In this document: positions 1,099 through 64,000 of the stretch, in pieces | Position numbering within the stretch: the first letter of the stretch is position 1 | How the letters are laid out: every line of letters begins with the position of its first letter | Origin: Lepidodermella squamata | Lineage: Eukaryota; Animalia; Gastrotricha | Reading direction: 5' to 3' | NCBI GenBank assembly: GCA_047495785.1 | Contig: JBLDXI010000050.1 | Span: forward strand, 372,001-436,000 | Length of the DNA: 64,000 nucleotides | Program-made: the position numbers and the translations under genes | The notes under the pieces: model-generated | What the model was told of the DNA's origin: nothing | Databases searched by the model: none | What the model saw: only the letters and a program-made list of their open reading frames with translations

Positions 1099-1297
1099 AT
1101 AAAAACAAAATTCTTCTCAAAATTGAAATAAATAAGACTATATTCTGATATTGTAAACTCCTTTCTCACATGCTTCATTCGCACTAGACTTCAATTATAC
1201 ACCTTGTTCGAAGTGCACATTTTACCTTTTACCCAATAAAAAATCACTTCCCTAATTGCAATTTATTTCAAATTTTAGTTGTTAAGAATGATAGAAA

Positions 1298-25319: not shown

Positions 25320-26350
25320 TTACGCCACAGCTGAAGTCAGCCCGACGCATTTTATCAGTTTAGTTTTCATTTCATCTTTTTCAGTCTCAAACGCAAGTTA
25401 CTTCCTTTTTCTAACCTTGAAGTTATTTAAAACTTATATAATTAGTCTGCACTTTATATTTTTGTAATAGTACCGGTGCCCGGCAAACAGCCGTCAATGT
25501 GGTCTAGCTAGCTCACCTTCTAACGCCAATCGACTGCGGTAGCTGCGACGCTTTAAACGTAATTTTTTACTATTTTCGAAAAAATCTTGAAATATGATTT
25601 TATTAAACTTTTTTCTCAAGCCTTACAAAATTATGCAATTTGCTTAATATTTTTAGAGCAATGAGCCAGGATGACTGTGACTTCAGCGCCCGATTTGTCA
25701 CTAAATTCAAACTCTAAATCGAGGCAAGTTATTCCCAAGAAATTGCGGTTCAGGAAAAATTGAAGTTTAATTTTTAAATTCAATTTAGTCGAATAAATTA
25801 ATAATCTAATATTTTTTGGAAATTTATAGGTCGATCGTTCGATGGCAATCCTGTGTCAATCACTGCCAATGTCAATGGCTCTCAGCTGTCATCGCTTTCA
25901 ACTGTGATCGGCTTCAGGATGGCTTTGAAAATGTGCGAGATGAACATTTTTAAACTAATTACATCCGATAATTTACTCTATCGTGATTATTTGAATTTTA
26001 CCTTGAATTAAAATTGCTAGTATAAAATGCGGATAACTGAGTTCTGACTTGAGTAACAAGAGGAATCAAGTGACATGAAGCCGGGTAGTTGCATTACAGG
26101 ATTGTAGTCTATTTGAATGAAGAGCAAAGGTGATATGAGCAAAGGTGGTTTTGGCCTAATTTTTAACTCCGAGAGCAGTTTCGCCGAAAGTTTCATCTAT
26201 CTGTTTGGCCGAAATTTGGTTATTTCAGCAAAGGATTTAGCTGAAATTTTGGCGGAGAATGTTTTTCGCCGATATTTTGGTCGAAGTGTTTCGCCTATTT
26301 GCTCAGACGGAAATTCGCGAGACCAAATGGGCGTTTTGGCCATATCTACG
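25320..26350 (+). repeat. Dispersed ~1-kb spliced-looking repeat unit, copy 1
   Basis: Collinear with 45210-46250; related segments at ~27420-27603 + 28916-29820 and, inverted, ~32345-32870. Confidence 0.65.
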
Positions 26351-32336: not shown

Positions 32337-33025
32337 AGAAAAATTTACCGCGATAATCTCGGCCTAAAATTTGGCTCATCTTTCTGATACCCCCAAATAG
32401 GCGAAACACATCGACCAAATATCGGCGAAAAACATTCTCGGCCAAAATTTCAGCTAAATCTTTTGCTGAAATCACCAAATTTCGGCCAAACAGATTGACA
32501 AGACTTTCGGCGAAACTGCTTTCCGGGTTAAAAATTAGACCAAAGCCACTTGGTCATATCATCTTTGCTCTTCATTCAAATAAGACTACGAACCTGTAAT
32601 ACAACTGCTCGGCTTCATGACACCCGATTCCTCAAGTCAGAACTCAGATATTCGCGTTTTGTTCCAGCAATTTTTATTCAAGGTAAAATTCAGATAATCA
32701 CGATAGAGTAAATTATCGGATGTAACAAGCTTAAAATTTTTCGGGAAGCAAATTTTTGAAGCCTTCCTGAAGCTGATCAGAGTTGAATAGCCATGAGAGC
32801 GGCCATTAGAATTGGCAGCAATGATTGCCACGGAATGAATAGCCATCAAACGATCGATCCATAAATTCAAAAAATATAATTAGATCAATAATTACGTGAT
32901 GGAAGTTGGCGAACCCTTTTTGAAAAAACCTTAGCGAACCATAGCTAACTCGGTCCAAAAGTTTGTGTCACTCGATATTGTTCTTGTGTTAGACTCAACA
33001 CATCTAATGAGATAGGCCGCAAGAT

Positions 33026-33510: not shown

Positions 33511-34020
33511 TTATTTTTTCATTGATACGACCGGCTCGTAGTGATTCCCACTAAGACGTAGGTAGATGGAGCGGCCATCGTTAGCTGCCGATGCAGCGGA
33601 TATACCATCAAGCCAGTTGGGCTGGCTCGAGGGACCAAGGCGCTTCCACGCCCACAGTTCGTTGGAAGTGGAGGCAGCGGTTTCATTGCCATAGATAAAT
33701 ATTGGCACCGCGAAAATGTCGGAGATGGCCTGGAGCTCGATGTACCGGCCGTACGTTGTCGGAAGCCGCATCTCCTTCTGCTCCACCCATAGACCGCCGT
33801 TGTTGGCATATTTAGGCTTAAGTAGCGGCGAACCTTCGCGAACAACGTGGTCGCAAACAAAGTCGCAAACGTGGTCTGCAGAGATTACATGGTTCATAAT
33901 GATTGAAAAGCAAGTCGTAATGACTTGAAACGTACAACTTCCCAAATCTTCCATTGCGGGTAGAAGAATGCCCCTAGATTTAAATGGCTCCAATGAGTTT
34001 AGAGCCTCAGACGCCTTCAT
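33511..34020 (-). pseudogene. OTU-family cysteine protease (deubiquitinase-like) domain, 5' side abuts a LINE tail
   Basis: EDLGSCTF (cf. GDGNCLF), TYGRYIELQAISDIFAVPIFIY (cf. WG..IEL.A.S), IYLRLSGNHYEPV. Confidence 0.7.
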
Positions 34021-34029
34021 ATCTTCTTG

Positions 34030-36570
34030 ATTTTTATTTATTTATTTATTTATTTATTTAAAACTGCAGATTCGCGTTGCGCGTGTACACAGTGATTTGT
34101 TTTTATATACAGTTTTCAAATATTTACAGGCGTCTCACCGTCGACACACAAGTTTTTACAATTTCAGGCAACAAGTTTTGTAAAATATAATTTTTAAAAA
34201 CAGTAATTGAACGCGAGTTAATTATGCATTCTGGTACCTTATTCCATACTTTGTTAATTCTGTTGCCAATACAAAATCTTCGGGGATCGGAGCGACATTT
34301 AGAAGGAACTATGCAGTGTTTCGCCTTTCTAGTGTTAGTAGAATTTTCGAACAAAGATGAAAAAGAGACATCAACAAAATTGTGGTAAGCTTTGAAACAA
34401 AACAACAAATCACGTAAAATTCTACGATGTTCTAATCGTAGTGTACCAGAGTGTTTGCACGCATCATCGTAGCTCAAGGTTGGAAACACAGCTTTAAGAA
34501 ATCTTTCTTGTATTTTTTCCAAATTGTCGATCGTTGTGAGAAAATAGGGGCTATACACAGTGGAACAGTAGTCCAGAATCGGTAAAACATAAGTTTTAAA
34601 AGCCATTATTTTTAATCGATTGCATCTGAAACTCTTCAAAATAGCAGAGCATAGACTTGAGCACCGGTTCATAAGTGTAGCACAATGTTGCGTGAAGCTT
34701 AGATCCTTATCAAAAACAACGCCTAGGTCTTTAGTAGACTGTACAACGCGAATAGGTATCTTATTTATAGTATAGTCTGTCGAGATTTCATTGCTTGCTC
34801 CGATTCTCATTACACAACATTTTTCACAATTTATATCGAGACCATTTTCATTAAAACAAGAAATGACGTTGTCGAGATCTTTTTGCAAAACACATTTGTC
34901 TTCAGTTTTCACAATCGGTCTGAACACTTTGTTGTCATCAGCAAAAAAAAATAAGGGAGACTCGACTTTTGTGTCGATATCGATAGCTATAAGAAATATA
35001 ATAAAAAGAAGCGGTCCAAGAACTGAGCCCTGAGGCACACCTGAGTTCACATTTCTCCAACCTGACATACTGTTACCTATTTTAGTTCGGAACTTGCGGT
35101 CTAAGAGGTACGACTTTAGCCACGCGAGTAAGTTTCCGCATATGTTGAAGCTCTTAAGAGCACTTATTAGCTTGAAAATAGGAACAGAGTCGAAGGCTTT
35201 CGCCAAATCAAGGTAAATTATGTCTACGGGTATATTATTGTCTCGGTAGAACGTGAATTTATTGAGACAGATTAAGAGCAATAGTTCAACATTTCGCTTT
35301 TCCAGGAAGCCGAACTGGTTAGGCGGTATCACATTATTTCTTTTCAGATACTCAGTAAGAATATTTTTTATAATTTTTTCTTGCAATTTGCAGATGTTAC
35401 TGGTAAGACTGATAGGCCGGTAATTTTTAGCTTCCAGCCGAGATCCGCTTTTCTTGTAGATAGGAATAACATCTGCCACCTTCCAAACGTCAGGTAGCTG
35501 ACCTGAGAGCATAGAAGAGTTGAAGATGATAGAAAGAGGTACAGAGAGAGAAGTAGCGAGATTTTTAAGTAAAAATTGAGGCAGATTGTCAGGGCCACCG
35601 CCAAATTTTGGCTTCAAGTTGGAGAGATACAGAGATACAGTATATTCGTCGAACTGAATGTGTTGTAGGCAGTCATTTGTAATCTTGTTATTATAACTGG
35701 TCCCCTCCGTAGATAAAGGCCTAAAATTCGCAGAGAAAGTGTCGGCAAAAAGCTCAGCCTTGTCTAAATCGCTAACGACAATTTTTTCTTTCGATTTCAT
35801 CGCTGAGGGCACAGACGATTTGTTTTCTTTCAAGAAATTTGATACAAATTCAAAGATTTTTTTCGCTGAACCATTTTCCAGAAGATCGTTTTCCCTTTGA
35901 TACTGAAATTTTAGCATTTCTTTTTGCTTTCTTTTTTGAAAGAACTTTCCGCCGCTTTGAACTTGTTTCGCGCATCGGCATCATTTAGCTTGTTTTTCAG
36001 ATATTTGCGATACGCTCGCTTCCTTTTATTTTCTAACGAGCTCGCTTTATTTTTGGATTTGCGGCGCCTTCTGGAATTCAGTTTTAAATTCCTGCGCGGA
36101 GAAAATTGAATAATTCCTCTATACATTATATCCAAAAACGCTGAGTAATTTTCGTCTACGCTAGTAGATTTCAGAATTTCCTGCCAGTCATACTTTTGAA
36201 GATATTCTGAAAAAGCAAAGAAGTCAGTGTTTCTGATATCAAAAACGCCATTGATGTCGTTTGAGACGGAGGGCGGTTTGTTTACAATGTTTAGATTTAT
36301 AATCATTGTATCGTGATCGGTTTTAGGTAAGGGTGTGAGTATGGTGATATTTTCTACAATGTCGCGAGATTTAGTAATGACCAGATCAAGAATGTTTTTC
36401 CCAGCGCGAGTAGGTTTTTCTACATTTTGAACAAGATTATTTTCGATTAGAAAAGCATTAAAATCGATGAAACTTTGTTTGGTATAAAACGTAGAAAAGT
36501 TGTAATCAAATTTCGGGAAATTAAAATCTCCCACAATTATTACAGTTTCGTGAGTATTTACAACACCGAG
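34030..36570 (-). mobile_element. CR1-like LINE, 5'-truncated within the endonuclease; ORF2 otherwise near-intact
   Basis: APE motifs GDFN, PTR..NILDLV, TDHD; RT motifs NYRPISLTS, DLAKAFD, GVPQGSVLGP, FADD; one frameshift in an A-run at ~35915-35925; (TAAA)n tail at 34030-34060. Confidence 0.92.
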
Positions 36571-36646: not shown

Positions 36647-37006
36647 TGACACAATATATTTTCTGAAAGGTGGTGACTTGACACATCCAAAGAATTCATT
36701 GACACAGCTGTCGGCTAAAATTGGTCGGCTAACTTCCATTTTGGCCCTGAAAATGGAAGTTAGCCGACCAACTTCAGCCGACCAGGTCTGGGTGTGGCCG
36801 ACCAATCTATACTTGATACCATTAAATGTGTCAGGACTTGTATATGAGGAATATCGAGTGACACAAACAATTGGCCCCGTTTTACTATGGTTCGCTGAAG
36901 TTTTAATAAATTGTAAGCTAAATGTGGTCGGCCAACTTCCATTTTTGGCCTGAAAATGGAAGTTGGCTGACCACCCCCAGCCGACCAGGTCTGGGTATGG
37001 CCGACC
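36647..37006 (-). repeat. Arm 2 of the 360-bp inverted repeat
   Basis: Reverse complement of 33026-33385. Confidence 0.9.
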
Positions 37007-37686
37007 TCCCGCTCCAGCCAGCAGATTCCAATGTTGATCTTCCTCCCATTGTCGATCCAGTTTCGAAATCTGGATTCTGGATTGAAGAACTCCTTCTGGC
37101 CAACAGCGATCTCGCAATTCTCCAGGATCCGAAAGGCTGGGTAAATGATCGAATCGTTGATGCCTTCCAGGAGCTGGTTCGCGAAATATTACCACCTGTT
37201 GTTGATGGGCTTCAGACCCCATTGGCGGCCTATACGGTGGAAGGTTTCAAAGCAGCGATAAATCAGGGCGTGCAAATACACCATGAGGGTCAACATTGGT
37301 TCGTAACCTCAACCCTTTCACTTGACAATGAAAACCGCCCGCGCCTAGAGCTGTGGGATAGCATGAGCCGCACCAAAATCGCCGATCATGCGAGGGATCA
37401 GCTCAGCAGCTGTTACGAAGAACTCCGCGATAACATGAACAAATTGACCGTTACAATAATGCCCTCTGATCAGCAGCCCAACGGAAATGATTGTGGGCTG
37501 TATGCCATGGCTAACATGGCCGAGCTAGCTTTCGGCAAAGACCCTTCCAACGTCTCCTATGTCAACGCTGGTAATGCCATGCGGTTGCACGTGATTCAAT
37601 GCTTCGAAGCAAAAGTCCTGTCTCGATTCCCTTCGGTTGTGCGCAGAGGCCGGCGGTCAGCGCCGAAAATTGTACAAATTCGATAA
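36997..37686 (+). CDS. Ulp1/SENP-like (peptidase C48 clan) protease domain, probably transposon-derived
   Basis: GWVNDRIVDA, QIHHEGQHWF, WDSM, QQPNGNDCGLYA: complete His-Asp-Cys triad with oxyanion Gln; AATAAA at ~37777. Confidence 0.8.
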   Translation: MADLPLQPADSNVDLPPIVDPVSKSGFWIEELLLANSDLAILQDPKGWVNDRIVDAFQELVREILPPVVDGLQTPLAAYTVEGFKAAINQGVQIHHEGQHWFVTSTLSLDNENRPRLELWDSMSRTKIADHARDQLSSCYEELRDNMNKLTVTIMPSDQQPNGNDCGLYAMANMAELAFGKDPSNVSYVNAGNAMRLHVIQCFEAKVLSRFPSVVRRGRRSAPKIVQIR

Positions 37687-45714: not shown

Positions 45715-46250
45715 TAATCTAATTATATTTTTGAATTTATAGGTCGATGGTTCGATGGCAATGCCGTGCCAATGGCTGCCAATGCGAATGGCTCTCGGCT
45801 CTCGTGGCTATTCAACTCTGATCGGCTTCGGGACGGCTTCGAAAATTTGCATCTCGAACAATTTTAAACTATTGATTAATACATCCGATAATTAACTCTG
45901 CCATGATTATCGGAATTTAACCTTGAATAAAAATTGCTACAATAAAATGCGAATAACTGAGTTCTGACTTGAGTAACATGAAGAACCACAGTGACATGGA
46001 GCCAGGCAGTTGAATATTACAAGATTGTCGTCTTATTTGAATGAAGAGCGAAGATGATATGACCAAGTGGTTTTGGTTTCGCCGAAAGTCTCGTCAATCT
46101 GTTTGGCCGAAATTCGGTGATTTCAGCAAAAGATTTAGCTGAAATTTTGGCCGAGAATGTTTTTCGCCGATATTTGGTCGAAGTGTTTCGCCTATTTGGG
46201 GGTATCAGAAAGATGAGCCAAATTATAGGCCGAGATTATCGCGGTAAATT
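45210..46250 (+). repeat. Dispersed ~1-kb spliced-looking repeat unit, best-preserved copy
   Basis: GT-AG introns 45431-45532 and 45573-45742, AATAAA at ~45927 and ~45941; homologous to 25320-26350. Confidence 0.65.
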
Positions 46251-46550
46251 TTCATCTGGGTAGGTTTTTGTTTTTGTTTTTGCCTCTTCAACCCATATCG
46301 GCACGAAGCTGATGAACGGAGGTGAACGGCTATTTGACACATGAAGGAAGATGAACTTTTTTGATACAAGGTGAACGAACGTGAACAAGCAAACGATTTT
46401 TTCTTGCTACGTGAACAGAGGTGAAAAAATGTGGGCAGCAGTCAGAAGGAGATGAACTATGGTGAACGTTACTTGGAGAGCTGATAAAACTTAATTTTGG
46501 CGGGAAATGAAATCCAATGTAGTTGAAGATCATTGCATTTCGGCAAAGTT

Positions 46551-47289
46551 ATGAATTTTGCGTTGGTATACCACGGTATAACGCAAACCTTAGCTAACTT
46601 CGGATTACAGGTTGTTTGAGCGCATTACGAATGGTCTCCTATGATGTTTCTAGTTGTCTGGAGGACAACATGTCAACCAGCGATTTTTCTGGAACTTGGA
46701 ACACGGATTCTTCGTGGAATTTGACCAAATGAGACTACGTGAAATTTTCTTGATGCATCCTGAAAAAGTCGACGCTAGTTATCTGCGGCCGGATTCGCCT
46801 GGTTTTCTACGGATTGCGTACATTTTTGTCGACGAAATTGAGGAGGAAGATGAAAACTGGCCAAGTATTGTTCTGTCCATTATAACAGCGGCCGGCGAAG
46901 CAGCGGGTAAAGCAGCTGTAAACGAGCGTCACGCGCTTATTTTCGGCTTGAAAGAAATGTTACGCTCGAACGGGCCCTATGCCATTGCGATTCTTGAATT
47001 CTTTGTCAAAAGGCTACTTCAATCCGGTTCTCGACTGAAAATATCATCTCTGGACAATGCGCTAGGTGGTGAGATTTTGTCTAGCTCAAGGTTCAAATCA
47101 CTGATGCCTGAAATTCTAAGCGAGTTTGACGATTCAATCTTAAAACGCCCAATTTTCACGCTAATGTCTTTGGCTCGACGTGCTGTATTGATTCGACTGA
47201 GACTTGGCTTGATGAGGCGCAATGAAGATATCGCGAGTTTATGCCTACCTGACAGCCTTAAAAACTATCTCCATTTCGACGATTTGTAG
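46551..47289 (+). CDS. SOCS-box protein (~231 aa), exons 46551-46610 and 46654-47289
   Basis: C-terminus PIFTLMSLARRAVLIRL...IASLCLPDSLKNYL matches the BC-box plus Cullin-box consensus at the canonical C-terminal position; 43-nt phase-0 intron; AATAAA at ~47344. Confidence 0.75.
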
Positions 47290-47645
47290 CTGGTTGTTGT
47301 ATTATACTGTTACAACGCACGCTTATGTGTCGAGTGAAAAAGGAATAAAAAGGCGGAAAAGTACTCATATATTTCTTATTTAATTCAAAAGTTGAGCCTC
47401 TTCATAATCTAGTCAGTTATAACAGCAGCGTTACACGGAAATATGAACATCATCGCATTAATAACGCTTGGTTATACTCTATTTTCAGCACATACAAATT
47501 GAAAAAAATTTCCGAGCTTGAAATAAAAAAATCTCAGAAAATTTTCCAAAGATGATAGTTATTGTAGCTATGAAACAGCAGATGCAGCTGCAGCTCGAAA
47601 AGTCAAATAGCGTCAATGTAGTAGTAAGAAACGTTGTACTAAGAG

Positions 47646-50477
47646 CTATGAGGCGATTTCAGTTACATTTGTTATTTTAGAGAGAAAAATTTCGCCACTA
47701 GCCTTGCTTTTGAAAACACAACAAGGAGCAGTAATGGAATCGTAAAGGTGGAAGGTCATGCAAGCGCCGATCTCGGTGACGACTTTGTGGTGACCGCGAC
47801 TTGAATTCGGCCATAGGTTTCGCACGCTTAACAATCGCAGGCCCACCCATAACTTGGAGCCATCTTTTAAAAAAATGGAGCAGACGCCGTATCCAAACTC
47901 GCCGAAAACGGCAGTCCCAGACTCGATAGTATCTCCACCAGTCAACAGGCCAAATGGGGTGAGACATTTTCTGTAAAGCTTGGGAAGATCATCCGGTAGA
48001 ATCGATAGATTACTCGTTTTCGAGATGTTATAGCGTTCGGTGATGGTAAGCTTAACGTCAACTGCAGCCCAGATGTAAACAGATTCCCCAGCTGTTTCGC
48101 CCGATTTATGCAGTGGTCTCGCCTCCAGCGACTTGTAGAAGCGAGAGGCGACATCGGCGTCCTGAAAGCGGTAAGAGCCATGTCGCAAAGCCTCCTCGAT
48201 GAGTGCCCGCTTCGCGATCTGATCGAGAGGGTGATTTGGGCCGGTGACGAATCGAGCTAAACGGCCGTAAAAACTCTCTAGCCCGAATTCGTCATACTCT
48301 GATAGGATACCATGCCTGGCCAGGAAAAGGCCAAAGTGTCTAGTTTGATGGATGGCATATGACAACAGCCGTTGGCCAAACAGCTGCCCAAAGCGCACGA
48401 CGAAGTTATCAAAACTTCTGCCAAGCTCTTCCGGGGTTCGACCTAAGAAACATAAATATAATTATTTGTCAAGCCTAAATTTATTAAACTCTGAAATTTA
48501 CCATCAAAATTTGGTACGAGGGATGAATGAACGATGTCGCAGAGCTCGATGATAAGAGTGCCGTAGGTTTCCAGCCACTCGTCATCGACATCAGGGGCTC
48601 CTTGACGGAAGAAAATAGGCGCCAGGTGGAGAATGAAAAGCGATACTCGTTCGCTTTTAATTTCCGGCTCTCAGCAATGCTCTCACGACCTCGAGTTTGA
48701 TAGAACGACGGAACACTAACCGTTTCAATATCATCCTCAATTTTTTGAAATGCGGTGTCCGAGCAGAGCTGAGCAGCCGATCCTGGTGCGATGATTCTTT
48801 CACAAATAACACGTATCACACCGAGGCACAATCTGTGTAGGTAGCCGGGGGCGGTGTCTTCAATGATATCGTAGAATATCAGGCGAAACAGTGGGCTCAA
48901 GTTGTAGGTACCCTCCGTTTCATCATTGCCTTTGAATGTTCCTCCGGATTCGTCGAAAAGCTGCTTAGCTAGTAGCGCTGCCAGTTTTTCAGACTCGTGA
49001 GTTCGAAGGTGTAAGGGGCTCGGAGCTTCACCCTCTTCCGGAAAAATGACAGTACTATCGTCCAGTCGCTTTTTCTTCTTCTTATTGGCAGCGTTTTCCT
49101 CGTCTTCATTGTCTGCTTTTTCTTCCTCATCATCAGCTTCATTACCTTCGCCAATTTTAGACTCGGCATAGGCCTGTCTCGATAATCCGCGAGTCCTGCA
49201 GTAAGCACAGCAATAGTGTCCTCCCGACTTGCGGCACATGGCGTGCGCTTTTGCCGGCAAGTCCATCACACCAATGACTCCTTTCGGCGTCACAACCTAA
49301 ATCAGGCACATTAAATTTTGTTATTAAAATGTTTATAGTTCCTAACCTTGATTTCAGTGCCACAAGGTAATGTAAGCCCATTAGAAATAACTTCATTCAT
49401 CTCGGTGATAAACTCGCTGAAAGTATCTTCAGGAACGGGATAACCGTCGCCGGACCAATTGTTAACCAGGAAACGAAGGCGGGTACCCCGAACACCGAGA
49501 ACCAGCATCCATAGGTTTTTGTTGGTATCTTTGTAAGCTCGTACTCCGTCATAGCCAAAGTAAAATGCGATTTTCTTACTGCTATTCTTGTACTTAACGG
49601 AAGTCAGCGCAGAAATAAGACGATCTTTGAATGGAAGATTGATCATTAAGCCATTTCCAGCTTTCGACACTGTAGGCGTTTGTACATAACGCTGCAAAGT
49701 TCGTACTGAGCCTATACCTTGAAACAAATTGGGCTTAGGTAGCAACACGGCTTGATCCTGAATTCCGCTCAAAATTGACTTTCATGATAATCTGCCAGTA
49801 ACGGCGGTTGCAAGACATAACATGAGACCATCTCCTAAAGTAGACTCGCTGCCACCATACAGCGGCTGTTTCAACTTATCGCGCCAGAAGTCATCTGGTA
49901 AATAATTATCGTGTTCCTCGTCGCTATTTCCGCCTTCTTCTTCTTCAGATTGAGAATTTCTTGAGGGGCTTGTCGAGAACTCTTCTTCGATCGAAGAGCT
50001 ATCAGATGGTAATCGATCAGCATCTATAGGCTCGAAAGTGCTGGTATCTTGGGGATGAGGATGTGAAAGGACACTTTGAACCCCCGAAGTTAGTTGAGTC
50101 ATTTGCTCACCATCCGAGTCGGCGCCAGCCTTCTGAGAAGTTGAATCAATATTCTCAGCCGACGAATTAGAGTCGATATTCTCAGATGATGAATTAGAGT
50201 CAGTAGTTTCAGAAGACGATTCAGACTCTGATTGTTGAGAAGACAATATCGGAAGTTCTTTAGATGAACTGCCAGCGATTATAACACGATTGGAAGCTGT
50301 ATTCACTGTCGAACTAGCACCCGCAAGAAACCCCGCTGCAGGTCGAATTTCATGCATAACCTTATGCGTATCGCGCCGTCGTTGCTTGTCAGATGGTTCT
50401 TCGCGAGATTCAACTTGTTCAGGAGCTCTCGGCTCACCAGCTTTACGAAGTGGAACGAATCCTTTGCGCTTTCCCAT
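47646..50477 (-). pseudogene. EnSpm/CACTA transposase, introns 49346-49297 and 48501-48443, with a nonsense codon and a frameshift
   Basis: YDGVRAYK...LW, DLPAKA...GHYCCAYC, YLHRLCLGV, KANEYR, YAIHQTRH...EFGLESFYG.L; in-frame TGA at 49784-49782; 1-bp frameshift near 48640. Confidence 0.85.
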
Positions 50478-51083
50478 TCATAGATAATTAATGATAACTA
50501 TAGAAATAAAAAATCCACCTTAAATGTACGTGGTGATTCTGAAAACCCTTTCTCTTGCGGCAGAGAATGGCAGAAAGTTTCGATGACGATTTAACAGTAA
50601 CAATAGTAACAGGATGTTGGATGAAAAATAAAACCCAAGTCGAAGCTATTGTATCTTCTACCCTATGTGACGTAACGAGTCGCGTGCCGGGATGCCGGAA
50701 GCGTGGCGGCGCGGAAAATAACGTTGCTATGAGTTTTACTTTTCACATTTCAATTTAAAATTATCAATAATCAATATTAAAAACTTGATTTTAGATTGTT
50801 ACAGTAATTATAATTTTTTCCCGCTCTTTTTTAAGCACAATGTTTTTTGCGAGCACGCGTGCACTTTTCAGTTTTTTTTGCGAGCACGTGCGCTTTGCTT
50901 TAAAATGGTAGCCGATTCATGAAAAACGGTTAGTTTTTTGTTTTTTTTTGCTATTCTTTCTTTTTGCCCTTCCTTATGGTCGACACTGCGCCATTTGCAA
51001 TCTTACCAGTACTGTAATTTTTTATTTCCATTTAGGTCCACTGCTGGTTTTAGAGTTATTGTCATCAAACTGCTGCCGTAAAC

Positions 51084-52632
51084 ATGGGCAAGAAATCGGA
51101 ACCTTACTCTCGCGAGCCTCACGCCGTCATCAAATGGCTGCAAAAAACTGTCGATGGCAATACAATGATCGGCTACGTTCCCTGTTCAAATCTAATCATG
51201 CAACCGGGCACGACCACTTCAGACTTGGTTGCGAACGAAACAAAGGTGGCGGCTGTGTTCAGGCATCAGATTCACGACGCTCTTTTCATTGAAATGTGCA
51301 AGAACGAGAAGATTGCAAAGGAATACGTGGAAAAGCTGGCAATCGAAATGCAAGTAGCAGCAGAAGCAGCAGCAGCGGCGGCTGCGGCGGACAAAGAAAA
51401 TGGCAATTTAGAAATCGGCTCGAAAGTCAGCAAGGACAAGAAGAACAAGAGTGAAACTGTGGAGAAGAAGGGCAGCAAGGAAAAGAAGGATACGAAGACG
51501 AAGGTTACGACATCGGAAGAAAGCGAGAGTGCTGTGGATCAATCCAAAGCGAAGAAGGCAAGGATCACGCCAGAAGCTAGCGAGCCTGCGGTCGAGAAGT
51601 GTTTCGTTCAAGCTGCAGGCACTAATTCAGAGTTCGGTCAAGGAAGTGATGTGGTCGATAGTTCTCTGGATCAAGCCACCACAACAGCCCATTCAGAACT
51701 GGTTCCACGAAGACATGATTCTAGTTCACTGGCCCCTTTGCCTATGCTTCCAGACGATTCGATGCTGATGTTCAATGACCCAGCCTTTTCTCAACTACCT
51801 AGCGACGGCCAGCCTGGCATCATAACGATGGTCAAAGCAGATGTGATTCTGTCGATGGCAGTGAAAGTGGATGAATTGTACATGGTTACCTTTTCTGATG
51901 TCCGCAAGCTTATGGTTTGTTCATCTCGTTTGTATTATATTTTTTCAATGTCATTTCTGTCTTAAAGCTCTTTGATTACATTATGCTGCTTCTTTTTTTC
52001 CAGGTTGCTGGGGTAGTCCCGCCAAGCGCCGAGTTGCTGGAAACATGCGACGACATCATGTTCTCAAGCGAAAATGGCAACAAATACGCAGCTCGTAAAT
52101 TGATGCTCGAAATGGTTATTGATAACAATTCGCATGACGACTTGATGAGCAAGACCCTAACTGGCAAGCAAAAGAATGGCAACGTCGATGCTGCGAAGGC
52201 GCTGGACCGTACGAAATGGGCGGCGATCATCAGTAAGTTGTCTTGACCCTTCATCCGTGCAGTTTCATAATTTTTTCTCCTCGTAGATTATGTTATATCG
52301 AGGTATCGGATTGTAGATGGCTTCAAATATCTACAAAAGAAGGCGATGCATTTTTTGAAGTACTACCGGTCGAAGTATGCAGGTGAGCTATTTCGGCTTC
52401 ATTGTAATGCCTAATGCTTAATATTTTGTTATTCATAGGAGGAGTGCCAGCGCGTAAAGATCTTTCCGCCACAATTGACAAGTCTGCCCAGATCGAAGAT
52501 TTCCATTTATCCAAGAGGCGCGTGACCCCGGCGACCCCGGCGACCCCGGCGACCTCGGCGACCCCGGTGACCCCGAAACCAGCTACCGCGGACGCCGGTG
52601 ACGTGAGCGATTCCGACGATTCTGATTTGTGA
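51084..52632 (+). CDS. BEN-domain-like accessory protein, exons 51084-51914, 52004-52232, 52287-52382, 52439-52632
   Basis: GT-AG introns keep one frame. ARKLMLEMV...LMSKTLTG...ALDRTKWAAIINYV resembles the BEN consensus; Lys-rich linker and (TPA)n tail; divergent from the transposase. Confidence 0.65.
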
Positions 52633-54289
52633 CTTGTTATTTTGATTGCGATTATACTCTCTCGAGTTCTCTTGTTTCTTTCGTTTGCAGATGTGAGCGA
52701 TTTCGATGATTATTCTGATTTGTGAAATGTTAATTTGATTGTGATTATACTCTCTCGACTTAGTCGTTATTTCCATCACCTGCTCGGACGCCGATATGTG
52801 CGATTCTCCGACCATTCTGACTTGTTGTGATATACTCTCTAGAGCTCGACTTCGATATCATTCGTTTTTTCATGAGCAGTTAATGTACTCCTCTTTTCAA
52901 CTTTTTCATTGAACCATTTCATTTCAATTATACTCGCGTCTCTTGTCAAGTAGATTGAAGATTGAGTCTCTCGTTATTCTTGTGCCTAAGTATGTGCCAA
53001 ATCAAGTAAAAAGTAGTCATAATAAGAACGACGTCTTTTTATTAGTAAAAGTACGTGAACGAATAACTGCTGAACGCACATGAACCAGCTAGCTGAACAG
53101 AGGTGAACCAGGCAGCTGAACGTAGGTGAACCAAACAGCTGAACTGAGGTGACTAACGACGGTTTGACACCTCAGTTCATCTCTTTAACTTGTTCAGCTT
53201 ACTTCAGCAAAACGGTGCCGATATGGGAAACGGAAAAACCGTGAAAGCAACATGCGTTGGTCATGCGTTGGTCTTTTTCGAAATTCGGCTGAAAATCTAA
53301 GCATCGATTCATCCGTAAATTTCCGAAAGCACCTAAAAAATAGGCATTTTCCTGAACCATTGGGGATTCAATTTCAGTAGGCAAATCGCGAGAGGAAGAT
53401 GCTGATGTAATGTTGACAGGGCTGCTTTTCGACATTACGACTTTTTTTGCTAAAGAAAAATATCTCTAAAATGCAAAAAGGGCAAAAAAGTTATGCAACT
53501 TTATTTAAAATAATTTCGTATAATTTATAAAAAATTCATATAATTTTTATTATAATATAAAAATGGGCAAGAATTTATTTTAAAGTAACAAATCAAAACG
53601 AGAATAATAAAAATGCACATTAATCGGAACAAATATTCTCTTGCTTCACCCTCCCGTTAAATCGGAGAATGACAAGAATATGAACAATATAGAGATTTGT
53701 CACCTCAGGAAAAATTCTGAAGATAGCATTGAAATTGGAGGATGGAATTATTCGAAATTGTTTTGAAAATTCTCTTCCCCACCTAATAAAAATTTGATTT
53801 GATGAATTATTCAAGATTTAGGTAGATAATGAAACTACCAAAAAATAAAGGGTCGACAAAAGTGGGATCGGGATGTGGCAGCTGTCGATGTCCTTGTTCT
53901 CGCCTTCGTTTGACAAAGCGAACCAGAAATATTGCACCGACGATCAAAACAACCCCTTCAATGATACCTACAGGCAAGCCGATTTTTCAGCACGGACATT
54001 TCATCAACAGAATTTTAGCCGTATTCAACAGGGGACTATGCGCTGCACTGAAGATGGAGACAAAAAGTGCAAGTTCACGTTTTAGCGGTTATGACGCGTC
54101 AAAAACGGCAATTTGGCTCAATGGCTTGTAAAGTACTGTACTTTCAGGGGTGTTTTGCGGCCAGTTTTCAATGCCAGGGAACCTTTCCTTCCGGTTCTAA
54201 CCATGACAGTCGAATAGAGGGCCATCGGTTCAGAAACCCCGAAAGATTTGAAGGCCGCGGGGGCCCACGTTTTAGCGGTTATGACGCGA

Positions 54290-57200
54290 AACGATAATTC
54301 TCGGGTGCGAAACGATAATGCCTGGCAGACAGAACGCGTCGTGTCAGTTCATTGTGGTAGCTCTCACAGAAATTTCAGAAAACTCATTTCTCGGTTGCGA
54401 ATCGATAATGCCTGCAGAAAAACGCATCTTGTCCGATCATTGTAGTAGCTCTCTCAGAAATTTCAGAAAATTCATTGCCCTTGAGTGAATGAAGAATGGC
54501 TCGCCGACAGAACGCATCGTGTCTGTTCAATGTGGTAGCTCTCACAGAAATTTCAGAAAATTCATTTCTCGGGTGCGAAATGATAATGCATGGCAGACAG
54601 AACGCGTCGTGTCAGTTCATTGTGGTAGCTCTCACAGAAATTTCAGAAAATTCATTGCCCTTGAGTGAATGAAGAATGGCTCGCCGACAGAACGCATCGT
54701 GTCTGTTCAATGTGGTAGCTCTCACAGAAATTTTAGAAAATTCATTTCTCGGGTGCGAAATGATAATGCATGGCAGACAGAACGCGTCGTGTCAGTTCAT
54801 TGTGGTAGCTCTCACAGAAATTTCAGAAAATTCATTGCCCTTGAGTGAATGAAGAATGGCTCGCCGACAGAACGCATCGTGTCTGTTCAATGTGGTAGCT
54901 CTCACAGAAATTTCAGAAAATTCATTTCTCGGGTGCGAAATGATAATGCATGGCAGACAGAACGCGTCGTGTCAGTTCATTGTGGTAGCTCTCACAGAAA
55001 TTTCAGGAAATTCATTGCTCGGGTGCGAAACGATAATGCCTGGCAGACAAAACGCGCCGTGTCCGATCATTGTGGTAGCTCTCACAGAAATTTCAGAAAA
55101 TTCATTGCCCTTGAGTGAATGGAGAATGCCTCGCCGACAGAACGCGTCGTGTCTGTTCATTGTGGTAGATGTCACAGAAATTTCAGGAAATTCATTGCTC
55201 GGGTGCGAAACGATAATGCCTGGCAGACAAAAGGCGCCGTGTCCGATCATTGTGGTAGCTCTCACAGAAATTTCAGAAAATTCATTGCCCTTGAGTGAAT
55301 GGAGAATGCCTCGCCGACAGAACGCGTCGTGTCTGTTCATTGTGGTAGATGTCACAGAAATTTCAGGAAAATCATTGCTCGGGTGCGAAACGATAATGCC
55401 TCGCCGACAGAACGCGTTGTGCCTGCTCATTGTGGTAGCTGTCACAGAAATGTCAGAAAATTCATTTCTCGGGTGCGAAACGATAATGCATGGCAGACAG
55501 AACGCGTCGTGTCAGTTCATTGTGGTAGCTCTCACAGAAATTTCAGAAAATTCATTGCCCTTGAGTGAATGAAGAATGGCTCGCCGACAGAACGCATCGT
55601 GTCTGTTCAATGTGGTAGCTCTCACAGAAATTTTAGAAAATTCATTTCTCGGGTGCGAAACGATAATGCATGGCAGACAGAACGCGTCGTGTCAGTTCAT
55701 TGTGGTAGCTCTCACAGAAATTTCAGGAAATTCATTGCTCGGGTGCGAAACGATAATGCCTGGCAGACAAAACGCGCCGTGTCCGATCATTGTGGTAGCT
55801 CTCACAGAAATTTCAGAAAATTCATTGCCCTTGAGTGAATGGAGAATGCCTCGCCGACAGAACGCGTCGTGTCTGTTCATTGTGGTAGATGTCACAGAAA
55901 TTTCAGGAAATTCATTGCTCGGGTGCGAAACGATAATGCCTGGCAGACAAAAGGCGCCGTGTCCGATCATTGTGGTAGCTCTCACAGAAATTTCAGAAAA
56001 TTCATTGCCCTTGAGTGAATGGAGAATGCCTCGCCGACAGAACGCGTCGTGTCTGTTCATTGTGGTAGATGTCACAGAAATTTCAGGAAAATCATTGCTC
56101 GGGTGCGAAACGATAATGCCTCGCCGACAGAACGCGTTGTGCCTGCTCATTGTGGTAGCTGTCACAGAAATGTCAGAAAATTCATTTCTCGGGTGCGAAA
56201 CGATAATGCATGGCAGACAGAACGCGTCGTGTCAGTTCATTGTGGTAGCTCTCACAGAAATTTCAGAAAATTCATTGCCCTTGAGTGAATGAAGAATGGC
56301 TCGCCGACAGAACGCATCGTGTCTGTTCAATGTGGTAGCTCTCACAGAAATTTTAGAAAATTCATTTCTCGGGTGCGAAACGATAATGCATGGCAGACAG
56401 AACGCGTCGTGTCAGTTCATTGTGGTAGCTCTCACAGAAATTTCAGGAAATTCATTGCTCGGGTGCGAAACGATAATGCCTGGCAGACAAAACGCGCCGT
56501 GTCCGATCATTGTGGTAGCTCCTACAGAAATTTCAGAAAATTCATTGCCCTTGAGTGAATGGAGAATGCCTCGCCGACAGAACGCGTCGTGTCTGTTCAT
56601 TGTGGTAGATGTCACAGAAATTTCAGGAAATTCATTGCTCGGGTGCGAAACGATAATGCCTGGCAGACAAAAGGCGCCGTGTCCGATCATTGTGGTAGCT
56701 CTCACAGAAATTTCAGAAAATTCATTGCCCTTGAGTGAATGGAGAATGCCTCGCCGACAGAACGCGTCGTGTCTGTTCATTGTGGTAGATGTCACAGAAA
56801 TTTCAGGAAAATCATTGCTCGGGTGCGAAACGATAATGCCTCGCCGACAGAACGCGTTGTGCCTGCTCATTGTGGTAGCTGTCACAGAAATGTCAGAAAA
56901 TTCATTTCTCGGGTGCGAAACGATAATGCATGGCAGACAGAACGCGTCGTGTCAGTTCATTGTGGTAGCTCTCACAGAAATTTCAGAAAATTCATTGCCC
57001 TTGAGTGAATGAAGAATGGCTCGCCGACAGAACGCATCGTGTCTGTTCAATGTGGTAGCTCTCACAGAAATTTTAGAAAATTCATTTCTCGGGTGCGAAA
57101 CGATAATGCATGGCAGACAGAACGCGTCGTGTCAGTTCATTGTGGTAGCTCTCACAGAAATTTCAGGAAATTCATTGCTCGGGTGCGAAACGATAATGCC

Positions 57201-60200
57201 TGGCAGACAAAACGCGCCGTGTCCGATCATTGTGGTAGCTCTCACAGAAATTTCAGAAAATTCATTGCCCTTGAGTGAATGGAGAATGCCTCGCCGACAG
57301 AACGCGTCGTGTCTGTTCATTGTGGTAGATGTCACAGAAATTTCAGGAAATTCATTGCTCGGGTGCGAAACGATAATGCCTGGCAGACAAAAGGCGCCGT
57401 GTCCGATCATTGTGGTAGCTCTCACAGAAATTTCAGAAAATTCATTGCCCTTGAGTGAATGGAGAATGCCTCGCCGACAGAACGCGTCGTGTCTGTTCAT
57501 TGTGGTAGATGTCACAGAAATTTCAGGAAAATCATTGCTCGGGTGCGAAACGATAATGCCTCGCCGACAGAACGCGTTGTGCCTGCTCATTGTGGTAGCT
57601 GTCACAGAAATGTCAGAAAATTCATTTCTCGGGTGCGAAACGATAATGCATGGCAGACAGAACGCGTCGTGTCAGTTCATTGTGGTAGCTCTCACAGAAA
57701 TTTCAGAAAATTCATTGCCCTTGAGTGAATGAAGAATGGCTCGCCGACAGAACGCATCGTGTCTGTTCAATGTGGTAGCTCTCACAGAAATTTTAGAAAA
57801 TTCATTTCTCGGGTGCGAAACGATAATGCCTGGCAGACAGAACGCGTCGTGTCAGTTCATTGTGGTAGCTCTCACAGAAATTTCAGAAAACTCATTTCTC
57901 GGTTGCGAATCGATAATGCCTGCAGAAAAACGCATCTTGTCCGATCATTGTAGTAGCTCTCTCAGAAATTTCAGAAAATTCATTGCCCTTGAGTGAATGA
58001 AGAATGGCTCGCCGACAGAACGCATCGTGTCTGTTCAATGTGGTAGCTCTCACAGAAATTTCAGAAAATTCATTTCTCGGGTGCGAAATGATAATGCATG
58101 GCAGACAGAACGCGTCGTGTCAGTTCATTGTGGTAGCTCTCACAGAAATTTCAGAAAATTCATTGCCCTTGAGTGAATGAAGAATGGCTCGCCGACAGAA
58201 CGCATCGTGTCTGTTCAATGTGGTAGCTCTCACAGAAATTTTAGAAAATTCATTTCTCGGGTGCGAAATGATAATGCATGGCAGACAGAACGCGTCGTGT
58301 CAGTTCATTGTGGTAGCTCTCACAGAAATTTCAGAAAATTCATTGCCCTTGAGTGAATGAAGAATGGCTCGCCGACAGAACGCATCGTGTCTGTTCAATG
58401 TGGTAGCTCTCACAGAAATTTCAGAAAATTCATTTCTCGGGTGCGAAATGATAATGCATGGCAGACAGAACGCGTCGTGTCAGTTCATTGTGGTAGCTCT
58501 CACAGAAATTTCAGGAAATTCATTGCTCGGGTGCGAAACGATAATGCCTGGCAGACAAAACGCGCCGTGTCCGATCATTGTGGTAGCTCTCACAGAAATT
58601 TCAGAAAATTCATTGCCCTTGAGTGAATGAAGAATGGCTCGCCGACAGAACGCATCGTGTCTGTTCAATGTGGTAGCTCTCACAGAAATTTTAGAAAATT
58701 CATTTCTCGGGTGCGAAACGATAATGCATGGCAGACAGAACGCGTCGTGTCAGTTCATTGTGGTAGCTCTCACAGAAATTTCAGGAAATTCATTGCTCGG
58801 GTGCGAAACGATAATGCCTGGCAGACAAAACGCGCCGTGTCCGATCATTGTGGTAGCTCTCACAGAAATTTCAGAAAATTCATTGCCCTTGAGTGAATGG
58901 AGAATGCCTCGCCGACAGAACGCGTCGTGTCTGTTCATTGTGGTAGATGTCACAGAAATTTCAGGAAAATCATTGCTCGGGTGCGAAACGATAATGCCTC
59001 GCCGACAGAACGCGTTGTGCCTGCTCATTGTGGTAGCTGTCACAGAAATGTCAGAAAATTCATTTCTCGGGTGCGAAACGATAATGCATGGCAGACAGAA
59101 CGCGTCGTGTCAGTTCATTGTGGTAGCTCTCACAGAAATTTCAGAAAATTCATTGCCCTTGAGTGAATGAAGAATGGCTCGCCGACAGAACGCATCGTGT
59201 CTGTTCAATGTGGTAGCTCTCACAGAAATTTTAGAAAATTCATTTCTCGGGTGCGAAACGATAATGCATGGCAGACAGAACGCGTCGTGTCGGTTCATTG
59301 TGGTAGCTCTCACAGAAATTTCAGGAAATTCATTGCTCGGGTGCGAAACGATAATGCCTGGCAGACAAAACGCGCCGTGTCCGATCATTGTGGTAGCTCT
59401 CACAGAAATTTCAGAAAATTCATTGCCCTTGAGTGAATGGAGAATGCCTCGCCGACAGAACGCGTCGTGTCTGTTCAATGTGGTAGCTCTCACAGAAATT
59501 TCAGAAAATTCATTTCTCGGGTGCGAAATGATAATGCATGGCAGACAGAACGCGTCGTGTCAGTTCATTGTGGTAGCTCTCACAGAAATTTCAGAAAATT
59601 CATTGCCCTTGAGTGAATGAAGAATGGCTCGCCGACAGAACGCATCGTGTCTGTTCAATGTGGTAGCTCTCACAGAAATTTTAGAAAATTCATTTCTCGG
59701 GTGCGAAACGATAATGCATGGCAGACAGAACGCGTCGTGTCAGTTCATTGTGGTAGCTCTCACAGAAATTTCAGGAAATTCATTGCTCGGGTGCGAAACG
59801 ATAATGCCTGGCAGACAAAACGCGCCGTGTCCGATCATTGTGGTAGCTCCTACAGAAATTTCAGAAAATTCATTGCCCTTGAGTGAATGGAGAATGCCTC
59901 GCCGACAGAACGCGTCGTGTCTGTTCATTGTGGTAGATGTCACAGAAATTTCAGGAAATTCATTGCTCGGGTGCGAAACGATAATGCCTGGCAGACAAAA
60001 GGCGCCGTGTCCGATCATTGTGGTAGCTCTCACAGAAATTTCAGAAAATTCATTGCCCTTGAGTGAATGGAGAATGCCTCGCCGACAGAACGCGTCGTGT
60101 CTGTTCATTGTGGTAGATGTCACAGAAATTTCAGGAAAATCATTGCTCGGGTGCGAAACGATAATGCCTCGCCGACAGAACGCGTTGTGCCTGCTCATTG

Positions 60201-63200
60201 TGGTAGCTGTCACAGAAATGTCAGAAAATTCATTTCTCGGGTGCGAAATGATAATGCATGGCAGACAGAACGCGTCGTGTCAGTTCATTGTGGTAGCTCT
60301 CACAGAAATTTCAGAAAATTCATTGCCCTTGAGTGAATGAAGAATGGCTCGCCGACAGAACGCATCGTGTCTGTTCAATGTGGTAGCTCTCACAGAAATT
60401 TTAGAAAATTCATTTCTCGGGTGCGAAACGATAATGCATGGCAGACAGAACGCGTCGTGTCAGTTCATTGTGGTAGCTCTCACAGAAATTTCAGGAAATT
60501 CATTGCTCGGGTGCGAAACGATAATGCCTGGCAGACAAAACGCGCCGTGTCCGATCATTGTGGTAGCTCTCACAGAAATTTCAGAAAATTCATTGCCCTT
60601 GAGTGAATGGAGAATGCCTCGCCGACAGAACGCGTCGTGTCTGTTCATTGTGGTAGATGTCACAGAAATTTCAGGAAAATCATTGCTCGGGTGCGAAACG
60701 ATAATGCCTCGCCGACAGAACGCGTTGTGCCTGCTCATTGTGGTAGCTGTCACAGAAATGTCAGAAAATTCATTTCTCGGGTGCGAAACGATAATGCATG
60801 GCAGACAGAACGCGTCGTGTCAGTTCATTGTGGTAGCTCTCACAGAAATTTCAGAAAATTCATTGCCCTTGAGTGAATGAAGAATGGCTCGCCGACAGAA
60901 CGCATCGTGTCTGTTCAATGTGGTAGCTCTCACAGAAATTTTAGAAAATTCATTTCTCGGGTGCGAAACGATAATGCCTGGCAGACAGAACGCGTCGTGT
61001 CAGTTCATTGTGGTAGCTCTCACAGAAATTTCAGAAAACTCATTTCTCGGTTGCGAATCGATAATGCCTGCAGAAAAACGCATCTTGTCCGATCATTGTA
61101 GTAGCTCTCTCAGAAATTTCAGAAAATTCATTGCCCTTGAGTGAATGAAGAATGGCTCGCCGACAGAACGCATCGTGTCTGTTCAATGTGGTAGCTCTCA
61201 CAGAAATTTCAGAAAATTCATTTCTCGGGTGCGAAATGATAATGCATGGCAGACAGAACGCGTCGTGTCAGTTCATTGTGGTAGCTCTCACAGAAATTTC
61301 AGAAAATTCATTGCCCTTGAGTGAATGAAGAATGGCTCGCCGACAGAACGCATCGTGTCTGTTCAATGTGGTAGCTCTCACAGAAATTTTAGAAAATTCA
61401 TTTCTCGGGTGCGAAATGATAATGCATGGCAGACAGAACGCGTCGTGTCAGTTCATTGTGGTAGCTCTCACAGAAATTTCAGAAAATTCATTGCCCTTGA
61501 GTGAATGAAGAATGGCTCGCCGACAGAACGCATCGTGTCTGTTCAATGTGGTAGCTCTCACAGAAATTTCAGAAAATTCATTTCTCGGGTGCGAAATGAT
61601 AATGCATGGCAGACAGAACGCGTCGTGTCAGTTCATTGTGGTAGCTCTCACAGAAATTTCAGGAAATTCATTGCTCGGGTGCGAAACGATAATGCCTGGC
61701 AGACAAAACGCGCCGTGTCCGATCATTGTGGTAGCTCTCACAGAAATTTCAGAAAATTCATTGCCCTTGAGTGAATGGAGAATGCCTCGCCGACAGAACG
61801 CGTCGTGTCTGTTCATTGTGGTAGATGTCACAGAAATTTCAGGAAATTCATTGCTCGGGTGCGAAACGATAATGCCTGGCAGACAAAAGGCGCCGTGTCC
61901 GATCATTGTGGTAGCTCTCACAGAAATTTCAGAAAATTCATTGCCCTTGAGTGAATGGAGAATGCCTCGCCGACAGAACGCGTTGTGCCTGCTCATTGTG
62001 GTAGCTGTCACAGAAATGTCAGAAAATTCATTTCTCGGGTGCGAAACGATAATGCATGGCAGACAGAACGCGTCGTGTCAGTTCATTGTGGTAGCTCTCA
62101 CAGAAATTTCAGAAAATTCATTGCCCTTGAGTGAATGAAGAATGGCTCGCCGACAGAACGCATCGTGTCTGTTCAATGTGGTAGCTCTCACAGAAATTTT
62201 AGAAAATTCATTTCTCGGGTGCGAAACGATAATGCATGGCAGACAGAACGCGTCGTGTCGGTTCATTGTGGTAGCTCTCACAGAAATTTCAGGAAATTCA
62301 TTGCTCGGGTGCGAAACGATAATGCCTGGCAGACAAAACGCGCCGTGTCCGATCATTGTGGTAGCTCTCACAGAAATTTCAGAAAATTCATTGCCCTTGA
62401 GTGAATGGAGAATGCCTCGCCGACAGAACGCGTCGTGTCTGTTCAATGTGGTAGCTCTCACAGAAATTTCAGAAAATTCATTTCTCGGGTGCGAAATGAT
62501 AATGCATGGCAGACAGAACGCGTCGTGTCAGTTCATTGTGGTAGCTCTCACAGAAATTTCAGAAAATTCATTGCCCTTGAGTGAATGAAGAATGGCTCGC
62601 CGACAGAACGCATCGTGTCTGTTCAATGTGGTAGCTCTCACAGAAATTTTAGAAAATTCATTTCTCGGGTGCGAAACGATAATGCATGGCAGACAGAACG
62701 CGTCGTGTCAGTTCATTGTGGTAGCTCTCACAGAAATTTCAGGAAATTCATTGCTCGGGTGCGAAACGATAATGCCTGGCAGACAAAACGCGCCGTGTCC
62801 GATCATTGTGGTAGCTCCTACAGAAATTTCAGAAAATTCATTGCCCTTGAGTGAATGGAGAATGCCTCGCCGACAGAACGCGTCGTGTCTGTTCATTGTG
62901 GTAGATGTCACAGAAATTTCAGGAAATTCATTGCTCGGGTGCGAAACGATAATGCCTGGCAGACAAAAGGCGCCGTGTCCGATCATTGTGGTAGCTCTCA
63001 CAGAAATTTCAGAAAATTCATTGCCCTTGAGTGAATGGAGAATGCCTCGCCGACAGAACGCGTCGTGTCTGTTCATTGTGGTAGATGTCACAGAAATTTC
63101 AGGAAAATCATTGCTCGGGTGCGAAACGATAATGCCTCGCCGACAGAACGCGTTGTGCCTGCTCATTGTGGTAGCTGTCACAGAAATGTCAGAAAATTCA

Positions 63201-64000
63201 TTTCTCGGGTGCGAAATGATAATGCATGGCAGACAGAACGCGTCGTGTCAGTTCATTGTGGTAGCTCTCACAGAAATTTCAGAAAATTCATTGCCCTTGA
63301 GTGAATGAAGAATGGCTCGCCGACAGAACGCATCGTGTCTGTTCAATGTGGTAGCTCTCACAGAAATTTTAGAAAATTCATTTCTCGGGTGCGAAACGAT
63401 AATGCATGGCAGACAGAACGCGTCGTGTCAGTTCATTGTGGTAGCTCTCACAGAAATTTCAGGAAATTCATTGCTCGGGTGCGAAACGATAATGCCTGGC
63501 AGACAAAACGCGCCGTGTCCGATCATTGTGGTAGCTCTCACAGAAATTTCAGAAAATTCATTGCCCTTGAGTGAATGGAGAATGCCTCGCCGACAGAACG
63601 CGTCGTGTCTGTTCATTGTGGTAGATGTCACAGAAATTTCAGGAAAATCATTGCTCGGGTGCGAAACGATAATGCCTCGCCGACAGAACGCGTTGTGCCT
63701 GCTCATTGTGGTAGCTGTCACAGAAATGTCAGAAAATTCATTTCTCGGGTGCGAAACGATAATGCATGGCAGACAGAACGCGTCGTGTCAGTTCATTGTG
63801 GTAGCTCTCACAGAAATTTCAGAAAATTCATTGCCCTTGAGTGAATGAAGAATGGCTCGCCGACAGAACGCATCGTGTCTGTTCAATGTGGTAGCTCTCA
63901 CAGAAATTTTAGAAAATTCATTTCTCGGGTGCGAAACGATAATGCCTGGCAGACAGAACGCGTCGTGTCAGTTCATTGTGGTAGCTCTCACAGAAATTTC
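54290..64000 (+). repeat. 90-bp satellite DNA array with higher-order repeats, running off the window
   Basis: Core ttgtggtagctctcacagaaatttcag every 90 bp; 720-bp periodicity over ~54850-57730; marker 88-bp monomer at ~54383, ~57891 and ~61039. Confidence 0.98.

Follow-up and report, generated by a model that had tools for sequence, protein, structure and literature searches.

A young CMC-type DNA transposon of the gastrotrich Lepidodermella squamata with a BEN-like gene and a SOCS-box gene

Structure of the element and its three genes

A stretch of 64,000 nucleotides from Lepidodermella squamata (assembly GCA_047495785.1, contig JBLDXI010000050.1, positions 372,001 to 436,000 of the forward strand), hereafter the window, was found to hold a DNA transposon of 6936 bp at 46292-53227 that carries a transposase gene, a BEN-like accessory gene and a gene ending in a SOCS box. 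The element is bounded by perfect 13-bp terminal inverted repeats (TIRs), CCCATATCGGCAC at 46292-46304 on the plus strand and its inverted copy at 53215-53227 on the minus strand, which pair over 36 nt at 72% when extended. CCCATATCGGCAC was matched at just these two sites of the window with up to two mismatches allowed, and no other part of the element was repeated elsewhere in the window. The dinucleotide AA was read off the sequence directly outside both ends (46290-46291 and 53228-53229), outside the TIR pairing, as the target site duplication; at this single site it is by itself a 1/16 chance match, and no empty site could be constructed from the flanks. These ends agree with a first-pass annotation, made from the letters of the window, which had proposed one element bounded by TIRs and an AA duplication. 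Both ends also carry subterminal arrays of the motif TGAAC. The left array (46313-46467, plus strand) has eight motifs, mainly as TGAAC-N5-TGAAC pairs, and the right array (53056-53196, plus strand) has eight (53056-53144) that point the same way as those on the left, and beyond these, close to the right terminus, two copies in inverted orientation. An older repeat lies immediately left of the element (45800-46252), with copies at 32340-32798 (83%) and 25897-26301 (81%).

The transposase is encoded by three minus-strand exons (49347-50477, 48502-49296 and 47646-48442, in order of transcription), which together read as about 907 aa, with an X at each of the two breaks. Exon 1 contains the first D (49548-49550) and a premature TGA (49782-49784). 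Exon 2 contains the second D (49261-49263), a C(2)C motif (49198-49209) and a 1-nt frameshift near 48635, and an H(3)H motif and a putative catalytic E were read in exon 3. In the spliced read-through these correspond to D310, D389, C407-x2-C410, H-x3-H near 675 and E near 699, the last within an LES motif. The first-pass annotation was thus right to place a transposase in the element, although the stop codon and the frameshift mark this copy as decayed and therefore non-autonomous.

The combination of C(2)C and H(3-4)H is the signature of the CACTA/Mirage/Chapaev/Transib clade (PMC12730594), and by motif reading it is present here as defined for CMC/CMCT transposases in that study. The TIRs and the AA duplication lie within the CMC/CMCT definition (TIRs with a target duplication of 2-5 bp), and accessory genes are a further shared feature. 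Compared with the known CMC/CMCT elements (EnSpm/CACTA, Mirage, Chapaev; PMC12730594), the element differs in its BEN-like second gene, in its SOCS-box third gene and in its termini, which are CCC…GGG rather than the 5'-CA…TG-3' of most, not all, members. It falls outside the strict plant definition of CACTA elements (CACTA or CACTG termini and a 3-bp duplication), since it begins with CCCAT and has a 2-bp AA. Termini of the CCC type are found among animal EnSpm-type families. The three transposase exons, searched singly, gave no match in Pfam, the PDB, protein databases or metagenomes. Judged from its motifs and end structure, which carry the assignment because no profile or homologue matched the separate exons, the element is a CMC (CACTA/Mirage/Chapaev; EnSpm-type) cut-and-paste DNA transposon. 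The CACTA label given earlier thus holds in the broad CMC sense, by motifs, TIRs and short duplication, but not in the strict plant sense. In the literature, no paper on a SOCS box together with a CACTA-type DNA transposon was found, nor one on EnSpm together with a BEN domain, most subscription journals lying outside the search.

The accessory gene (51084-52632, plus strand, 449 aa) is divergent from the transposase and was modelled with four exons (51084-51914, 52004-52232, 52287-52382 and 52439-52632), open throughout and with canonical GT-AG introns, the first donor being uncertain. Its BEN-like domain lies in exons 2-3. The exons, searched singly, had no Pfam match (PF10523 for BEN), and the single-sequence AlphaFold model of the BEN exon (predicted local distance difference test, pLDDT, 49) gave no fold match and was too poor for a meaningful fold search. 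The protein language-model features of exon 2 (Atlas) lie near BEN clusters (cosine 0.95 and 0.94), with 16/30 matches to BEN and a recognition value of 2329, and make a BEN-type gene likely, not proven. The divergent, spliced gene of the first-pass annotation was thus recovered, its BEN identity coming from these features and not from Pfam. By analogy with TnpA of plant elements, the BEN protein probably binds the TGAAC subterminal repeats. An ankyrin identity for the BEN exon, suggested by a weak match to designed ankyrin proteins, was rejected because the match was summed over repeats. Directly behind the gene (52600-52860), its last codons and the adjoining 3' flank are duplicated in degenerate form over 93 bp.

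The SOCS-box gene lies behind the left end of the element (46670-47289, plus strand), convergent with the transposase, and probably consists of a single coding exon. The open reading frame (ORF) at 46654-47289, which in a cis-spliced model would contribute 211 codons open from 46654 onwards, ends in the SOCS box, and an ORF of this length appeared in 0/2000 shuffles of the region. With one extra T behind 46683, as in a second copy described below (X1), the gene is an intronless ORF of 206 aa starting from the ATG at 46670. In the window, the run of T at 46684-46688 has one base fewer, the frame from this ATG stops after 20 codons and the remainder is a 186-aa ORF from the ATG at 46729. Upstream, a segment at 46622-46654 (plus strand) ends on a TAG acceptor (46651-46653), 16 nt before the ATG at 46670; this acceptor may be used in splicing, and TAG acceptors likewise precede the ATGs of the transposase and BEN genes. 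A cis-spliced first exon is possible. The gene had earlier been described as spliced and convergent; its orientation and its SOCS-box end were confirmed, but splicing is not needed to obtain the ORF. The encoded protein comprises a helical N-terminal domain (46684-47154, plus strand) and the SOCS box (47155-47271, plus strand), which has Ala for Cys in the BC box and LCLP as its cullin box.

Relatives of the SOCS-box gene and a second copy of the element

The SOCS box, read from the letters in the first-pass annotation, was confirmed by its Pfam profile PF07525 (E-value 1.4e-5; 25.6 bits, against a gathering cut-off of 23.5). The best sequence match among solved structures was the box of ASB8 (E-value 0.1), which also has Ala at the Cys position of the BC box. 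Relative to the Cul5 box, LP-hydrophobic-P, the cullin box LCLP retains the fourth-position Pro and not the second, and the Cul2-box pattern also fits. A review calls the fourth-position Pro the most important one (PMC3355856).

Among 1.84 billion representative proteins, one true relative was found, P0001 (E-value 2.7e-9, 34% identity over residues 33-210), with a SOCS box scoring 34.2 bits against PF07525. The homology to P0001 also holds outside the SOCS box (score 92, against no more than 55 in shuffles), and therefore the whole gene is a member of this family. The 2.2-kb contig with P0001 (L001, run SRR23086389) also carries a neighbouring paralog, P0003. Both are 28-34% identical to the SOCS protein, intronless, in tandem and SOCS-box-ended. 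Contig L001 had no similarity to the transposase or the BEN gene, and no transposase lies beside the pair. The two paralogs (L001:533-1890) are 92 bp apart and lie downstream of another ORF in operon-like packing. A word-based protein search with the SOCS ORF returned nothing, a profile built from the three sequences returned its own members alone, and scans of metagenome, viral and bacterial contigs gave no relative. A phage or bacterial donor of the gene was rejected as unsupported, having no relative in those scans. P0002 was discarded as a low-complexity chance match, and a candidate Helitron-like 3' end in L001 was dropped (fold z -0.75).

For the N-terminal part (residues 1-153), the clusters ranking first in Atlas features were SOCS-box, ASB17, ANKRD9 and ankyrin clusters (0.82-0.90, low recognition; ASB17, ANKRD9 and Ank clusters at 0.82-0.87), although no calibration exists for such scores on parts of a protein, and the SOCS box may influence them as context. 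A degenerate ankyrin domain of ASB17/ANKRD9 type may be taken from these language-model features as a lead only. The protein resembles ASB17, ANKRD9, ASB8 and the viral MGF360/505 proteins (PMC8867543, PMC13342108) in combining a helical N-terminal domain with a C-terminal SOCS box. It differs from these proteins in its length of about 200 aa, its LCLP cullin box, its want of a Pfam ankyrin repeat and its encoding in a transposon.

A word search of public sequencing runs identified one run, here X1, that holds 74% of the sampled words of the element; this run, to be taken as a single study, may have a source related to that of the window. A single X1 contig of 6279 nt spans the element from 46314 to beyond 52190 and is 99% identical to it, with 52 substitutions (about 0.9%). 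All three genes are present on this contig and none has the lesions of the window: Trp stands at the position of the premature stop, and the base missing near 48635 is in place. Relative to X1, the window lacks 27 nt of transposase exon 1 near 49680 and again near 50181, as well as the T behind 46683; with the X1 indels added up to 52190, the length becomes 6999 bp. Among the transposase differences listed between the two copies, 9 were synonymous, against 12 that were non-synonymous; the ratio comes to about 0.4 (Fisher p 0.04), as expected for the comparison of an intact with a decaying copy. The family is young, and the window holds a damaged member of it. Because the lesion-free copy also has the SOCS-box gene, this gene is cargo of a mobile family and not a one-off. 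Neither of the outcomes that the first-pass annotation had named as refuting its proposal, a missing SOCS-box profile match or an ORF present in the window copy alone, was thus observed.

Two further, diverged X1 contigs match the left repeats and then rejoin the window (46405-46654), both ending at 46654 on the TAG acceptor, so that the segment before the ATG is kept in them. X1 also contains a transposase relative of 86% identity (48714-49058). Together these diverged sequences suggest a sister family that has a gene slot at its left end as well, the gene filling it not being visible at 80% identity.

Retained cargo or passenger, and possible roles of the adaptor

Our tentative preference, held at a little less than even confidence, is that the SOCS-box gene is retained functional cargo of this CMC family. 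The core of the family would be the DDE transposase and a divergent BEN-type DNA-binding helper, and the third slot, behind the left end, would hold a gene taken from the host-type class of degenerate-ankyrin/SOCS-box genes. From what is known of this class, intact copies would most likely yield a working substrate receptor. Bound through its SOCS box to Elongin B/C and to either Cul5 or Cul2, it would use its helical N-terminal domain to select a protein for ubiquitination. The cargo would have been in the family for so long that close similarity to any host paralog has gone while its ORF is kept, and was probably retained by selection. The leading candidates for its substrate would be a host protein that limits transposition or a protein of the element itself. 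We infer the expression, ligase assembly, selection and benefit of the SOCS cargo.

In favour of this reading are the position of the cargo inside the TIRs and again in the lesion-free X1 copy, its SOCS box above the Pfam cut-off with the likeness to ASB8, the homology to P0001 beyond that box, the ASB17/ANKRD9/ankyrin features of the N-terminal part and the acceptor kept before the gene in the sister contigs. In the whole X1 contig set, no other contig matched the coding region at 80% identity or more, except over a patch of about 20-40 nt. A gene captured recently should still have a close parent in the host, and the missing parent hints at an old, selected cargo. When the neutral evolution of a 186-codon ORF to 20% divergence was simulated, about 6% of cases left it open with substitutions alone, and 0/3000 did so with frameshifts included. 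A rival reading is a Pack-type capture, in which a host SOCS-box gene rides as a passenger that is of no use to the element and is bound to decay, as it has in the window copy, any effect being the dispersal of adaptor genes for the host. The missing parent speaks against such a passenger, as do the completeness of the ORF and of its SOCS box, neither of which is fragmentary. The passenger reading is favoured by the youth of the family (0.9% between copies), since about half of neutral ORFs are still open at 1% divergence, by the relatives in the database, which are a tandem pair without similarity to the transposase or BEN gene beside them, and by the frame of the gene in the window, which has probably been lost to the 1-nt frameshift. 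A passenger is a reasonable possibility, although we do not consider it the probable one.

This probable frameshift also counts against retained, functional cargo, and several other results weigh on the same side. The missing-parent argument draws on a single, filtered set of contigs; filtering may have removed the parent, or the parent may itself be lost. The differences between the two copies in the cargo gene itself (1 synonymous, 1 non-synonymous and 1 indel) are uninformative for the ratio of non-synonymous to synonymous rates. No RNA run was found among public runs to hold the element. The predicted ankyrin domain had no Pfam Ank match, and the AlphaFold model of the SOCS protein (pLDDT 51) gave no fold match and was too poor for a meaningful fold search.

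If the gene is functional cargo, its role can be compared with known counter-defence systems. VANC proteins of plant Mutator-like elements are products of accessory anti-silencing genes that bind DNA motifs of their own element, and their effect has been shown. The likeness to VANC is that a cut-and-paste element has an accessory gene for which a role against host silencing is proposed; the closer analogue in this element, if any, would be the BEN gene rather than the SOCS gene. The first-pass annotation had proposed that the adaptor degrades a host silencing factor. In such a case the factor, of Piwi/Argonaute, HP1, SETDB1 or HUSH type, would be recruited to an Elongin B/C-cullin ligase and degraded, just as viral SOCS/BC-box proteins dispose of restriction factors. 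There is precedent in fungal EnSpm elements with TET/JBP genes, which have been proposed to undo silencing (PMC12730594), and in the viral ankyrin/SOCS-box protein MGF505-1R, for which recruitment of a cullin ligase and a drop in p300 are reported (PMC13342108); the possible old retention of the cargo points the same way. The fungal EnSpm/ESTA/Plavaka elements with TET/JBP cargo (PMC12730594) are alike in being CMC-type with a captured cellular-type gene. They differ in that the TET/JBP enzyme activity bears on the silencing mark itself and recurs across many lineages, whereas the SOCS cargo is a predicted adaptor in one family. The SOCS-box adaptor does lie inside the TIRs, and again in the X1 copy, but nothing points to a silencing factor as its substrate. 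The cullin box LCLP is non-canonical for Cul5, in contrast to the canonical LPIP of P0001, the window copy is itself decayed and the database relatives do not lie beside a transposase. By our own reasoning, a degrader acting in trans would help all elements, so that selection on it would be weaker than on the sequence-specific VANC. Degradation of a silencing factor by this route is unlikely, and the fuller proposal, that the CMC family encodes its own selected Elongin B/C-cullin receptor for a host silencing or restriction factor, in the manner of Vif, must be considered equally improbable.

The adaptor might instead limit or time transposition of the element itself, either by destabilising the element's transposase or BEN protein or as a decoy that titrates Elongin B/C. 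Linkage of the genes and their convergent orientation speak for such a role, and the non-canonical LCLP could mean weak cullin binding as in SOCS1 (PMC3355856). The fourth-position Pro is retained, however; taken together, the two variants are very unlikely.

Cullin-ligase receptor modules inside transposons are known for F-box genes. A Zisupton isoform with an F-box is reported (Böhne 2012, as cited in PMC12062965), and F-box gene fragments occur in Drosophila telomeric elements (PMC13534243). Those captures belong to the SCF/F-box system and are fused or fragmentary, whereas here a stand-alone, whole gene of the Elongin B/C type lies in a CMC element. Counter-defence by transposons is known from few systems (VANC and the fungal TET/JBP cargo), and the targeted destruction of host factors is familiar from viruses. 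With a complete receptor of the SOCS-box type in a mobile DNA transposon, it would become possible to test directly whether animal transposons also degrade host factors. Even as a passenger, the gene suggests a route by which host ubiquitin-adaptor genes move around the genome.

Other features of the window

At the left end of the window (16-5808), several ORFs encode a PIF1-like helicase and a DNA polymerase B of the protein-primed type (DNA_pol_B_2), a Polinton/Maverick-like arrangement. A non-LTR reverse transcriptase (RVT_1; 34124-35917, minus strand) lies between an ORF for a Ulp1/C48 protease (36922-37686, plus strand) and the ORF at 33511-34020. The latter ends in an OTU-like HYEPV motif, OTU being a reading without a Pfam match. 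To the right of the element, a tandem array (54300-64000) with a period of 180 bp, built of 90-bp subunits, comprises about 54 copies at 88% match and runs off the window end.

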